DNA from: Piromyces finnis finn
Lineage: Eukaryota; Fungi; Neocallimastigomycota
Assembly: GCA_002104945.1 (NCBI GenBank)
Contig: MCFH01000011.1
Span: 434,001 to 498,000, forward strand
Length of the DNA: 64,000 nt
Direction of reading: 5' to 3'
The position numbers were made by a program, and so were the translations under genes. Position 1 is the first letter of the stretch; every line of letters starts with the position of its first letter. Shown here in pieces: positions 2,869-39,902 of this stretch. Under the pieces are notes generated by a model. It worked only from the letters and a program-made list of their open reading frames with translations. It did no database searches and was not told the DNA's origin.

Positions 2869-5379
2869 ATGTTTTCCGAAAACCAATTATCCCAAAGCGA
2901 CCGCTTGAACAAGAACAACTATGATGAATGGCAGTTCCTCATCGGCAACATCCTGAAGTCCAAGAAGATTTTTATCTACGCAAAGGAAGATGTTATAAGC
3001 TCCTTACGTGCGAAGGTCGAAGAATCAAAGCACAAGAACGGAGGAGTAGCCGAGAAAAATCTCTTAACGGAACTAGAAGATGCAGAAGCACAAGATGCTT
3101 TAGCTGCATCAATCATCAGCACCAATGTGTCCAGAGAATGCCTGGAACACATTAAAACCCTTGATACTGCATTTGAGATAATGCAAAAGTTGAAAACACT
3201 TTATCAAGGTAGTGAATCATCTGATATCCAACATTGGATGAAGAAGCTTTATTCCTTAAAGGCCAAAAGTCTAACTGATTGTAAGGATGTGCTCCACCAA
3301 ATCAGTGAAATATTCTCCGTGTTGGAATCCAATAATTCTAACTTAGGAGACTGGGAAAAAACAAGGATTATTTATTATTCCTTGCCTCAATGTATGAGAA
3401 CCCAGATACACCCTGATGGAACGAAGAAGATTAAGGATTTTTTAACTGAAGTCAATAACAAAGTTAATTTCCAAATCTACCTCCAAAAGAATATCAAATA
3501 CAATCAGTCGATTATCAACAACGAACAAGATGACTTGATGGACATTGACTTTGTAGGCCGAAGAAGCAAGAATGATTCCTCAAATCAATATTCCTCCAAA
3601 GCCAACCAGCAAGGTAACCAGAAACAATTATTATGCGCTATCTGCGGTAGGCACGGTCATAAACTCGAAGATTGTGAATATAATTTATTCACAAAGAAAA
3701 ACAAAGGAAAGAAGCCCACCGAACAAACTTCCAAGTCTTCCAAACCAAAGAAATCGAAGAACAACAAAGCTAAAAACGAAAATATTAAAAAGGGAAAATC
3801 TATATCTAATATCGAGTACGACACCGAAGAAGACTCAGGGGAAATCTCTTTCGATGAAATAAGAGCTATGTATCCAAACAATATGGATAGCATAGAAACC
3901 ATAAAACCTGAGGAAGTAATGGAGGAAAAGGAAACCAATGTTTCCACAATTAAGTCCATTCAAAACTGTGAAATCGCCGACCACACAGTATGGACTTATG
4001 ATACAGGTGCATCAGAACATATCACCTGTAATAAAGGAATTCTTAAAAACTATAAGGAGAATTCCATTACCATGAAATGTGCCAATAATTCAGTCTGTGA
4101 ATTCGAAGGAGTAGGCACATATGATGGAACAATCAATGGTTTTGAAGTACATCTTGATAACGTGTACTATTCAAAACAAATCAATAAAAATCTTCTCAGT
4201 GGTACCAAGCTCGTTAGAAATGGAATATTTTGTTATCTCAGCTCCCAAGATAACACACCTATTCTCAGTTTAAACTACCACGACAACAAGAAGAATAAAC
4301 AGTTCAATATTGGAAAATACACAGCCAACGAAAATAATATCTTCAACATTCCAATAATGAACAATACTAAAAAGGATCTTTCAATTGATACATTGGATGC
4401 TGTATCAGGAAAAGACGAAAACAGGATGTTGTGGCACAGAAGACTTGGACACTTCTACTTCAATGACATCAATAAGTATGTCAAGCTACACAATGAGTCG
4501 GCACCATCATGCATGGACTGCAGAATTGCAAAACTTAACAAGAAACCCAATAATGGAATTACACCCAAAGCAAAAGATATACTTGAAATAATCCATGCAG
4601 ATGTTATTGGGCCAGTCAAAACATCGTATACTGGCAAGAAATACATCCTATCACTTATCGATGTATTCTCAAGAAAATGTTGGGTATATCTCACGGAATC
4701 CAAATCTGAAATTCCCTCATCAGTTATAAACTTCTTTAAATTCGTTTTAAACCAATATAATAAAAATATTAAAGTGTTCAAAACAGATCAAGGCAAGGAA
4801 TTCAATAATAAATTAATTAACCAATTCTGCGAAGAACATGGGATTTTAAAGTCTTTCTCACCTCCATACAATCCAGCCAACAATGGCATGATCGAAAGAT
4901 ATAATTATACTTTAGTAAGTTGTGCTAAAACACTTTTACTATGGAGCAAATTAAATAATGACTTTTGGGACTTTGCGGTTATGCACGCAAACTTTATTTA
5001 TAACAAAATTCCACACAGCGGTATAGGATTCCAAATTCCAGATGAAGTATTTTTCAACAATAAGGTTGATCTCCGATATGTCAAGGTTTTTGGATGCGCA
5101 GCTTATTTCAAGGTCAATAAACAAAACAGAAGTAAGTTCCAAAGCAACTCCAAAATGGGGATCTTTATTGGATTCAACGAAAAATCACACTGCTACAATA
5201 TCCTTGATCCAGAAACACAAAATATTCATCAAGTACGTGAAGTGGTTTTTGATGAAGCTACACCAGGAGGGGAAATTTTCAAGCAAATAACTAAAGGAGA
5301 CAATAATACAATATCACACTTTTACCTTCACAACTTGAACTCCTACAACTCTTCCCTTCCCCGCGGTCCAGAGGACTAG
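2869..5379 (+). CDS. gag-pol: Copia ORF1: Gag, aspartic protease, integrase (836 aa)
   Basis: Gag LNKNNYDEW; zinc knuckle CAICGRHGHKLEDC; protease YDTGASEH; LWHRRLGH...CMDC zinc-binding motif; integrase core HADVIGP / DVFSR / TDQGKEF / NGMIERYN. Confidence 0.95.
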   Translation: MFSENQLSQSDRLNKNNYDEWQFLIGNILKSKKIFIYAKEDVISSLRAKVEESKHKNGGVAEKNLLTELEDAEAQDALAASIISTNVSRECLEHIKTLDTAFEIMQKLKTLYQGSESSDIQHWMKKLYSLKAKSLTDCKDVLHQISEIFSVLESNNSNLGDWEKTRIIYYSLPQCMRTQIHPDGTKKIKDFLTEVNNKVNFQIYLQKNIKYNQSIINNEQDDLMDIDFVGRRSKNDSSNQYSSKANQQGNQKQLLCAICGRHGHKLEDCEYNLFTKKNKGKKPTEQTSKSSKPKKSKNNKAKNENIKKGKSISNIEYDTEEDSGEISFDEIRAMYPNNMDSIETIKPEEVMEEKETNVSTIKSIQNCEIADHTVWTYDTGASEHITCNKGILKNYKENSITMKCANNSVCEFEGVGTYDGTINGFEVHLDNVYYSKQINKNLLSGTKLVRNGIFCYLSSQDNTPILSLNYHDNKKNKQFNIGKYTANENNIFNIPIMNNTKKDLSIDTLDAVSGKDENRMLWHRRLGHFYFNDINKYVKLHNESAPSCMDCRIAKLNKKPNNGITPKAKDILEIIHADVIGPVKTSYTGKKYILSLIDVFSRKCWVYLTESKSEIPSSVINFFKFVLNQYNKNIKVFKTDQGKEFNNKLINQFCEEHGILKSFSPPYNPANNGMIERYNYTLVSCAKTLLLWSKLNNDFWDFAVMHANFIYNKIPHSGIGFQIPDEVFFNNKVDLRYVKVFGCAAYFKVNKQNRSKFQSNSKMGIFIGFNEKSHCYNILDPETQNIHQVREVVFDEATPGGEIFKQITKGDNNTISHFYLHNLNSYNSSLPRGPED

Positions 5380-30754: not shown

Positions 30755-31475
30755 ATGAAGTTCAAGGATAGAATATATTTACTTCTCTCTTACACAAATG
30801 CAACGGATATTAAAACAAAATATCCAAATTTCAAAACGATATTGTTATTAAACGTTTTTGGTGTTCTACTTTATTTTGTTATACCTACATTTTTAGCTAA
30901 AGCAATATTTACACTGATATTAATAGCTATTAACCTTTTATTTAAAGAAGTTAGAGGAATTGTTATTACATTTATACCAATTATGTTATGTAAGTAAAAA
31001 TAACAAGATTAGAAAAAAAATTTTTTTTTATACTTTATAATTAGAGAGAAAAAAAATTCAAAGAAAAAAAAAAGTGTTGTAAAAAAAATTTAATGAAAAA
31101 AAATATTTATAATTAAATATATTTTTATATACAATTATGTATGTAAATATAGGGGTATTATTATTCGCTTCTGCAAAAGATATTCCTATGAGTTGGAGAA
31201 GACCAATTGATGTTTCTACATTGTATAGTTGGGAAAAAAAGCTTGGTTCTTTTTGCTTTAAATTAAATGATTATAATAATGTTTTTTTGGACTTATTAGC
31301 TTGGTTACCTTACGGTATCATTCACTATATAATGCCATTTTTAGTTGGTATCTATTTGATGCTTTTTTATAAACCAACTTATACCTCTGCTTATCTCTTC
31401 TTTTTTGGTATCATGAATGTCGCTGGTGTCATCACTCAACTTTTCTGGCCCACTTCACCACCATGTAAGTATCCT

Positions 31476-31507
<32 letters not shown>

Positions 31508-32469
31508 TAATAGTTTTCAATATAAAAATTTGTTGTAGTCTTGAATGATTTTAGAATTAATATCATTCATTATAAAATCATCATTTTATCCTGAAATGAT
31601 TTTTGAAATGGAAGAGGATAGATATAAAAAATTGTTTAACAATAAAAATTAAATAATTGATTTTTAATATATATATTTTGCTTTATTCCCCTTTATTTTT
31701 TTTTTTTTTTCACATAGGGTATTACTTAAAAAATAAAACAAACCCAGCAGATTATTCTATGCATGGTGATCCAGCAGGTCTTCAAAGAATCGATGATTTA
31801 TTCCATATTAGCTTCTATAATCCAACTTTTACTGGAAATCCACTTCCATGGGGTGCATGGCCTTCCTTACATTCAGGCTTTGCTTCTTACTCAGCTGTAT
31901 TCCTTACTTACCTTTATCCAAAAATTGGTCCTTTCTTTTTCATTTATGTTGCATGGATTTGGTGGGCTACTATGTATCTCGGTCATCATTATTTAGTTGA
32001 CCTTATTGGTGGTTTTGTTTATGCATTTGTCAGTGCTCTTGGTGCAGTTATTTATCTTCAAATAAAGAAACCACACCACAAGGATTACGCAGAATTAAAA
32101 TCTATTATGGTTCAAGAATATGATTACAAATTATTGGCTAATGGAATTAATAATAAAGGAATGTATGGTAAGGGAGAATTGTCAGAATCTGTAAAAAAAC
32201 TTTTAGGTGAAAGTTCTGGAACAATAAATATATTAAATGATGGTGAAGAAAGTAGTATATCAAATGATCAAAATACTGCTGTAAATGATAAAAGACAACC
32301 TAATGAACATATTGTGGTTATTGATCATCAAAACTCTTTGAATATACCAAATGATCAAAACATGGATAGATTAAGTATGATTTCAAATATAGATAAGGAT
32401 TCTTCATTGGATTATCAAACAAGTATGAAAGATAGTCATATTGATATTACAAATGCAAATTATATTTAA
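30755..32469 (+). CDS. AUR1: Inositol phosphorylceramide synthase, join(30755..30989,31153..31464,31718..32469), 432 aa
   Basis: The splice model restores FIPIMLWVLLF...WRRPIDV, LDLLAWLPYGIIHY, SPPWY, MHGDPAGLQRID, AWPSLHSG and TMYLGHHYLVDLIGG (Aur1 catalytic His/His/Asp). All introns are GTAAGT...AG. Confidence 0.93.
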
Positions 32470-34434
32470 AAGAATTTTTTTTTATTTTCATGATTATTAT
32501 TATTATTAATTTTATATATATATATTTTTTTGGAATTTTAAAACAATTTATATTCAATATATATATAATATAACACATAATATTATTTCAATTTATTATA
32601 TTATTCTTTCTTTTATTATTATTCTATTATTTATTTTTTTTTATGTATAATTATTTTTTTTTTTTTTTCAATTTTTGAATAATGATTACTATCCTTTTTT
32701 TTTTTTTTTTTTCAATTATTATATTAATTATATATATATATATCTTATTTCATTTAAAAATATTAATCATTTTTTTCTTTTATTTTAATTCCTATTATAA
32801 TGATTTAGATAAATAAAAAATTAGTAGTAGTAGAATGGAAAGAAAAGAAAGAAAATAGAGAATAGAAAAAAAAAAAAAAAATTGGAAAAATAGAAAAAAT
32901 AGAAAAAAATGAAATAGATAAATATAAATCAAATCAAATAGAATAATAATAATTTTGAAGAAGAAGAAAAAAATAATGATTGATAATAATAATAATTAAA
33001 AAAAAAAATAATAATAATAATAATATAGAACAAAAAATCCAAAATATAAAAAAAAAAAATAGAAAATAAATAAGAAGGAAAAAAAAAAAATAGTTATAAA
33101 AAACATTTTTTTATTCATTCAACAAGAAACTTCCCTATTTTTTTTTTTTTTTTTGGAAATATAAAAGAAATAAAAAAAAAAAAAATCAATATCATATTTC
33201 ATCTTTTTTTTAAAAGTTACCTATTGACGTTGAATATAAACTTTATTAGTTTCAACTAGATAATTCAAGTAATATTGGAATATAAAATTCATTAGTATTA
33301 ATAAAAGCAATATAATTTGAAAATTTAAAAAAGAAAAAGTGGAATATTGATTTTTATTTAGAATGGAATTAAAATGGATTTTTTTTTTTTTTTTTAAGAA
33401 AAAAAAGTATGGAATAGTGGATATTTATTATCTATATATAGATTTTAATGTAATGGAATAAAAAAAAAAATAAGGAGAAAGAGAAAAAATTAAAAGTGGA
33501 ATGAGATTTTTACTATTTTTTCTATCCTTATAATAATTTAATTTTATTTTATTTTTATAAAGGATTTGAGAAAAGAAATCTATCAAAAGTCATTAAAAAC
33601 GATCAATTATTGGATTTATTCATTAATAATATATATTTAAAAAAAAAAAAAAAAAAATTTTTTTATATATTCTATAAAATAGCTGATTTATATTATTTCT
33701 TTTTTTTTTTATAATTTATTAATTAAATATATATAATTTTTACAATTAATTTTTCTTTTTTTCTTTCTTCATTCTTTCTCTTTTTTTTTTTTCTCTTCTT
33801 TCTTCTTTTTAATATAGAATTAGAGAAAGAATAAAAAAAAAAAAATTATTAAATATTATTAAATAGGCATCAAGATTTTATTTATATATTTATTATTAAA
33901 AAAAAAAAATTTAACAATAGAAACAACTATAATAACTTAGACACAACTTTTTAATTTAAAATGTAATTATTTTAATTCAATTATTTCATTTTTAAAATAT
34001 TCATTCATTCTTTGATAAATTCAAATTTTTTTATATTATTTTATTCGAATTCATCATTATATTAATTTAAAATAAAAAAAAAAAAAAAAAAAAACATCAA
34101 CAGAAATATATTTAAAAAATAGTAAAAAAATAAAAGGTTTTTATATTGAGTACAATAAATTATTCAATAGAACATTTATATTATTACTAATTTTGTTTTG
34201 AAAAAAAAAATAATAATAATAATAATTTGGATATATCTATGATTGTGTTTAATAAAAATTGGTATTTATTTATTTATTTTTTTTATAAAAATGGTAATAT
34301 AATGTGGTTTTATATTAATATTTTTTCTTCTCCCAATAAAATAATTTCTTAAAGGTAAATTCTAACGTATCACTGTAACACTTTTATAATTATTAAATAA
34401 ATGTAAAATCCATCCGCCATTTTTATTCTTTGCA

Positions 34435-34622
34435 ATACTTTTAATCCTGTTGGCTAAGATCAAATGTAAAAGTATTTGTTCTTTTCAGTGACAACTGAAA
34501 GGAGTTTTTTTAATGCTTCTTGGTTGTCTTACTTATTATTAAGATCAGTTGAAGCATCCTTTAGTATGCAAAAAATGCTTCAACCAGCATTTTACCACCA
34601 CTGATGTTCCTAGTTCCCGAGT
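34435..34622 (+). ncRNA. U2: U2 snRNA homologue (divergent variant or pseudogene), about 188 nt
   Basis: TGGCTAAGATCAA...GTAT.TGTTCTTTTCAGTGACAACTGAAA aligns to U2. Stem IIa TTTCAG/CTGAAA, IIc GACAAC/GTTGTC and stem III GTTGAAGCAT/ATGCTTCAAC are intact. The branch-recognition, Sm and loop IV motifs are altered. Confidence 0.85.
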
Positions 34623-35208
34623 TTTATTATATAAATATTTTTTATTAAAAAATACCATAATAATAAAGCCATTAGTAAATTTTATAAATAATAAAATATA
34701 GGTGAAAAGAAATGATAAAATATAAAGTTTGCCTATTAAAAAAAAAAGATTTTTTTTAACATTTATAATAAAAGAAGAAATTAATATTAAAAATTTATAA
34801 TTATTTATAAAAATGTAAAGTATAAAAGTTGGTAATAATACTTTTTTTTTTTTTTACCATTAATACAAATTATAATACAAATCATAATTTTTGTATTATA
34901 ATTTGACTATTTTTTATTGTATTTTAAAAAAAAAATATTTTTATTAAATATTTTAGTTATTAATCTACTTTTAATATTTATTTTATTAAATTTTTAATAA
35001 AATCCTCTAAAGGAAGTTGCTATGGATTAATTCATCAAATAAATATTATAGAGTATAAAAAAAAATGCTATCTATTAATATGTTAATGAAATAATAATTT
35101 TTATGATATATTTCAAAAAGTGTTAAACGTCTAATACTTTAAATATTCTATTATTTATTTATTTATAGGGGAATAGGAAAAAAAAAAAAAACGAAAATTT
35201 ATTTGTGA

Positions 35209-35335: not shown

Positions 35336-39902
<4,567 letters not shown>

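Follow-up and report, generated by a model that had tools for sequence, protein, structure and literature searches.

Few RNA sequences of eukaryotes are as constant as the GUAGUA of U2 snRNA. A U2-like locus in which that sequence is interrupted raises the question of whether the organism possesses a variant U2 with a changed means of reading branch sites, or carries a dead copy of the gene. The preliminary description of the locus left both answers standing, under a title that favoured a variant. The evidence assembled here favours the other answer: the locus is probably a dispersed, non-functional U2 copy, that is, a pseudogene of the orphon type, although the helices that it has kept still speak for a variant.

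The window, by which we mean the whole 64-kb stretch of DNA that was analysed, has a G+C content of about 19%, and the nearest matches to the proteins encoded in it come from Piromyces sp. E2 and Orpinomyces. U2 was the sole Rfam family detected in it, even at E<=5, and no tRNAs were found there. The match to the U2 family (RF00004) lies at 34434-34618 on the forward strand and covers the full model (1-192) with a score of 54.4 bits and an E value of 5.3e-08. A full-model match at that E value represents a likeness to U2 far beyond chance, and the U2 ancestry of the locus is supported. U12 or another member of the clan was considered and dropped, since Rfam clan competition keeps U2. The score is just over the gathering score of the family, which is 46 bits. 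Three fungal-type U2 genes that were recovered from metagenomes, and that served as comparators in alignment A1, scored 132, 100 and 75 bits, the last of these being from a gene that is cut at its 5' end. Among the metagenome contigs, L006 (Ga0256305_1004691) has 68% GC and ends, at 3087-3241, in a 5'-cut canonical short U2 of far lower GC; this contig may be a chimeric assembly.

The first base of the U2-like body is probably an A, at either 34434 or 34435. The body and its elements are as follows.

34434-34622, forward strand: U2 snRNA-like body of 189 nt, 33% GC, delimited by the RF00004 match and by a drop in GC to about 8% at 34620
34453-34461, forward strand: U6-pairing helix I sequence GCTAAGATC (as RNA, GCUAAGAUC), intact and identical to the consensus
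34464-34478, forward strand: altered branch-point recognition region, reading ATGTAAAAGTATTTG where the comparators invariably have GTGTAGTATCTG
34483-34500, forward strand: stem-loop IIa, 7 bp (nt 50-56/61-67), perfect, its loop lacking 2 nt relative to the expressed U2 and the comparators
34523-34528 (nt 90-95), forward strand: GUUGUC, the 3' strand of stem IIc, forming 6 perfect bp with GACAAC at 34490-34495 (nt 57-62)
34531-34543, forward strand: degenerate Sm site ACUUAUUAUUAAG, with AUUAUUA (34535-34541) against AUUUUUG in the comparators
34548-34584, forward strand: stem-loop III, closed at its base by 10 perfect bp, GUUGAAGCAU / AUGCUUCAAC (34548-34557 / 34575-34584)
34586-34608, forward strand: shortened stem-loop IV, its loop reading UUACCACCACU without AUUGCA, where the U2 of L008 has CAUUGCAC

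When the branch-point recognition region was aligned with the three fungal U2 genes, it differed from them by a G-to-A substitution, an insertion of AAA and a C-to-T substitution. GUAGUA has become GUAAAAGUA (34466-34474) and no uninterrupted form of it, such as a functional U2 has, is present. All three comparators share an identical stretch of 30 nt, GAUCAAGUGUAGUAUCUGUUCUUUUCAGUG, which is altered in the locus by these same three changes (G to A, +AAA, C to U). The branchpoint-interacting stem-loop can nevertheless be drawn as AGATCAAATG (34457-34466), a loop of TAAAAG and TATTTGTTCT (34473-34482), with nine of its ten positions paired and a single U.U, and both substitutions convert positions that are A.C and G.U in the canonical molecule to A-U. 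The sequence and the alignment bear out what the preliminary description had said of this part of the molecule, namely that it contains a three-A insertion and two substitutions, that the substitutions make A-U pairs in the branchpoint-interacting stem-loop, and that the U6-pairing sequence is kept. Its statement that the 5' side of stem I is degenerate was too strong, for cmscan pairs six of the seven positions, although ViennaRNA predicts that a new helix, described below, out-competes stem I.

The 3' part of the molecule combines sound helices with lost binding sites. Stems IIa, IIc and III are all able to form, the GUUGUC/GACAAC pairing being one that we take, from established knowledge of yeast U2, to have the role of stem IIc. 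There is no AU(4-6)G Sm site between stems IIc and III. Loop IV reads AUUUUACC in place of the AUUGCAC of the comparators, leaving it without the AUUGCA to which U2B''/U2A' bind, and in the Rfam alignment stem IV is shorter by 12 model positions. The pattern of substitutions, as far as it could be compared, is mixed: G-to-A changes are present at the tip of stem III and in the Sm site, while the helices are kept. The earlier account of this region, in which stems IIa, IIc and a perfect 10-bp stem III were described as intact and the Sm site and loop IV as degenerate, agrees with these results at every point. With neither an Sm site nor the AUUGCA of loop IV, assembly of a core snRNP would not be expected. 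The locus therefore has the element order of the RF00004 U2 (stem I, GCUAAGAUC, stems IIa/IIb/IIc, III and IV) but departs from it in the interrupted GUAGUA, the AUUAUUA Sm site, the loop IV without AUUGCA, the changed 5' end, the loop IIa that is 2 nt shorter, and in giving no sign of a stable RNA.

The last of these differences comes from sequencing runs. In the run index the sequence of the locus occurred only in runs of one organism: run X1, which is probably the source DNA, and run X2, which is labelled as probable RNA, its type being a guess, and which has 0.39 of the sampled words. Contigs of X1 and X2 were placed on positions 34250-34800 at 80% likeness, a procedure that filtered out some contigs, including X1's own over the locus. 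The expression evidence consists of the contigs of one run from one growth condition. One X2 contig, 850 nt long and with a mean depth of 5578, can be aligned to 34507-34561, where it differs at 9 of 55 nt (about 16%). Its 5' overhang, TTCTTTTCAGTGTGACAACTGAAACGAGG, is a textbook fungal stem-loop IIa; stem IIa of this U2 reads UUCUUUUCAGUGUGACAACUGAAACGAGG, the loose end of the contig reads CAGTGTGACAACTG, and its 3' overhang is AGCATGCTAAGGGTTTCAACACAGGTGTTC. A contig of that depth with a canonical stem IIa indicates that the organism makes much of a different U2 of the canonical type. At one end the same contig breaks off near U2 nt 43-45, directly 3' to the branch-site region, and at the other it runs for some 700 nt beyond the U2 body. 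The break could reflect expressed U2s that differ just upstream, or an accident of assembly.

The locus itself is represented in X2 by a contig of 158 nt with a depth of 2.4. It is identical to 34514-34671: the 5' half of the copy is missing from it, and it extends 49 nt past the end of U2; the word share of 0.39 fits this contig alone. Such a product would be as expected from read-through, from the long UTR of a neighbouring gene or from some genomic DNA, and is unlike a mature snRNA. Judged from contigs in a run whose RNA status is guessed, X2 has no abundant, stable transcript of the locus with defined ends. The preliminary description had named a want of expression as grounds for abandoning a functional variant, and within the X2 data no snRNA expression from the locus was detectable. 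A Pol III transcript was also considered and rejected: there is a run of four T residues after the 3' end, but an internal run of seven U residues would, to go by the sequence, terminate Pol III.

The chromosomal neighbourhood makes a comparison possible with Piromyces sp. E2, the closest relative available. Two kilobases upstream of the copy lies the following gene.

30755-32469, forward strand: PAP2 / inositol-phosphorylceramide-synthase (AUR1)-like gene, with an intron, collinear with Piromyces sp. E2 contig KZ151355.1, as are four downstream blocks

The gene (31134-32469 in this comparison) has an ortholog on the E2 contig, and tblastx found five collinear blocks between 31.1-39.0 kb of the window and KZ151355.1. 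The exons are about 77% identical to those of E2 at the nucleotide level and the intergenic DNA is not alignable. In or beside the convergent gene downstream of the copy, positions 37033-37343 form a long AAT/ATT repeat that is open on both strands, encoding poly-Asn on the reverse strand and poly-Tyr on the forward strand. No U2 was found in the matching 2.7-kb interval of E2 (about 9.0-11.7 kb of L010) either with Rfam at E<=1 or with blastn at a word size of 7. The absence of the copy from the E2 site is also compatible with a loss in E2.

The metagenomes were scanned with a pattern that runs from the branch region through stem IIa and admits both the canonical and the insertion form; it returned nine loci, all of them yeast-type or other canonical U2s, from other fungi. 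A stem IIa pattern had no match in the prokaryote and viral collections. Five matches to an insertion in GUAGUA in those two collections were set aside as chance, none being a U2 either by Rfam or by eye, and the metagenome, viral and prokaryote collections yielded no U2 of the insertion type. Within the collinear E2 interval and the collections searched, no conservation of the copy in related species was found. Uniqueness to one assembly was a further finding that the preliminary description had expected to tell against a variant, and within the data searched the copy is confined to this organism. We found no relevant literature on the snRNAs of the Neocallimastigomycota (anaerobic gut fungi), nor any report of such copies in these fungi.

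How the copy came to lie where it does is suggested by the DNA on either side of it, which includes the following element.

34300-34433, forward strand: upstream stretch of raised GC, 20-30% in the composition profile against about 10% in nearby intergenic DNA

Elevated GC extends over about 34300-34622, and there is a steep fall to about 8% where the U2 homology ends. The GC of the body is between that of a typical U2 (about 40%) and that of the flanks (about 10%), which is as expected for a copy that is decaying under AT pressure. The upstream stretch is possibly promoter sequence that was copied with the gene. Within it, CTAACGTATCACTGTAACAC near -70 and TCCATCCGCCA near -20 are two patches that contain G and C, and they are candidate remnants of an snRNA promoter. 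No convincing target-site duplications were found, the copy being flanked only by AT-rich low-complexity repeats. A 5' end that is complete, some 130 nt of upstream sequence and flanks without convincing target-site duplications together argue for copying at the level of DNA. The rival origin, in which the dead copy was made by retroposition from an RNA, has in its favour that the copy is solitary and that snRNA retropseudogenes are common in animals. It does not readily account for a match that runs the full length of the model, for the upstream stretch of raised GC, or for flanks that have neither an A-rich tail beyond their general AT-richness nor a convincing duplication, and we regard an RNA-mediated origin as unlikely.

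A dispersed pseudogene that arose by DNA-level copying is the reading that we prefer, and it is favoured by the dominance of a canonical U2 in X2, by the empty E2 site, by the loss of both the Sm site and the loop IV motif, and by the low Rfam score. We infer the following course of events. A U2 gene was most likely duplicated at the DNA level, taking about 130 nt of its upstream sequence along, and the copy would have been inserted into intergenic DNA between the IPC-synthase-like gene and the convergent gene. The copying would postdate the split from Piromyces sp. E2. The copy would later have acquired lesions that a working U2 could not tolerate, in the form of the AAA insertion with its two substitutions and of changes to the Sm site, the loop IV motif, the 5' end and loop IIa, while splicing in the cell would rely on the separate, highly expressed U2 of the canonical type.

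Dead, scattered copies of small-RNA genes that are repeated in tandem, known as snRNA pseudogenes or orphons, are familiar from animals. The locus resembles them in that it stands alone and has diverged while an intact, expressed family exists in the same genome, in its loss of essential motifs for protein binding and target pairing, and in being expressed as a trace at most. It has what a pseudogene should have, namely homology to a family with an expressed member of the canonical type and the loss of essential elements. It differs from other snRNA pseudogenes in that its helices are unusually well kept for its divergence and in that upstream sequence was apparently included. Stem IIa, stem IIc and the base of stem III are perfect and helix I is untouched despite a difference of about 16% from the expressed U2; a rough estimate, as opposed to a computed one, is that uniform neutral decay would spare all of those elements well under 5% of the time. 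The substitutions in the branch region improve the branchpoint-interacting stem-loop, and GC is raised upstream as if a promoter had been kept. These features count against a pseudogene.

The 5' domain contains a further feature that counts against a pseudogene, a helix between the following two arms.

34434-34443 (nt 1-10), forward strand: 5' arm of a perfect 10-bp helix, AAUACUUUUA, pairing with the altered branch-point region
34467-34476 (nt 34-43), forward strand: 3' arm of the same helix, UAAAAGUAUU, spanning the AAA insertion

AAUACUUUUA is the exact reverse complement of UAAAAGUAUU. The only other perfect 10-bp stem in the copy is stem III, and a perfect 10-bp stem of any kind appeared in 2.75% of 2000 dinucleotide shuffles. 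In the ViennaRNA prediction the pair probability is about 0.8 for this helix, about 0 for stem I and about 0.13 for the branchpoint-interacting stem-loop. The complementarity means that the 5' domain is most deviant in just those two parts that match one another, and the alterations in the 5' end and the branch region look coordinated. The helix could be due to chance in an A/U-rich sequence, to a single template-switch mutation or to selection.

The first of the functional readings is a variant U2 with a changed branch-site specificity, in which the lengthened GUAAAAGUA loop would pair with U-rich branch sites (UACUUUUAAC) of this very AT-rich genome and the RNA would be expressed weakly or in one life stage only. 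The intact helix I and stems IIa, IIc and III, the improved branchpoint-interacting stem-loop and the raised GC upstream are all features that such an RNA might be expected to show, and a precedent exists in the variant snRNAs that are expressed in humans, including vU1, U2-2 and others (PMC3561869, PMC8457000). Like the locus, the human variants are copies of a gene for a major spliceosomal snRNA, differ from it in sequence and lie away from the main cluster. The human RNAs keep their Sm sites, are transcribed and processed, and have few changes in the parts that read the target (PMC3561869, PMC8457000), whereas the locus has lost its Sm site and, with it, the AUUGCA of loop IV. At most it gives rise to traces of an RNA that overruns the 3' end, it is not present at the collinear E2 site, and the predicted fold would hide the very branch region that a variant is supposed to use. 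A branch motif that fits the variant, TACTTTTAAC, occurs once in the window against an expectation of 0.66, so that there is no enrichment in what is a powerless test at 64 kb; the canonical TACTAAC, under the same limitation, occurs seven times against 6.5 expected. Taken with the evidence for a pseudogene, these points make a variant U2 quite improbable.

If the locus does produce a working U2-derived RNA, its GUAAAAGUA loop might be gated by the remodelled 5' end, and the RNA might serve as a condition-specific U2 for the U-rich branch sites of an extremely AT-rich genome or as a regulator of the U6/U2 pathway that does without an Sm core; we consider this a distinctly doubtful proposition. 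The remaining reading, in which an RNA derived from U2 has taken on a new role, non-spliceosomal or regulatory (a decoy, for example, or a structured non-coding RNA), and masks the branch region with its 5' end, can point to the 10-bp helix and its rarity among the shuffles and to the selective keeping of GCUAAGAUC and several stems, but it is very improbable, given that there is no sign of a stable transcript, that the copy is single and known from one organism only, that the helix is A/U-rich and its post hoc p of about 0.03 is weak, and that one template-switch mutation or chance could yield it. The readings weighed here overlap, so our confidence in one of them is not to be set against the others as if they were mutually exclusive.

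As a pseudogene, the locus carries little weight in itself, being one more dispersed copy of an snRNA gene, in this case in the anaerobic gut fungi. It does serve as a warning for annotation, in that an Rfam match to U2 that is barely above threshold in these genomes need not mean a working gene. Were the variant reading true, the locus would represent a naturally occurring U2 whose branch-site reader is altered and masked by the RNA itself, and would offer a rare handle on the choice of branch sites.
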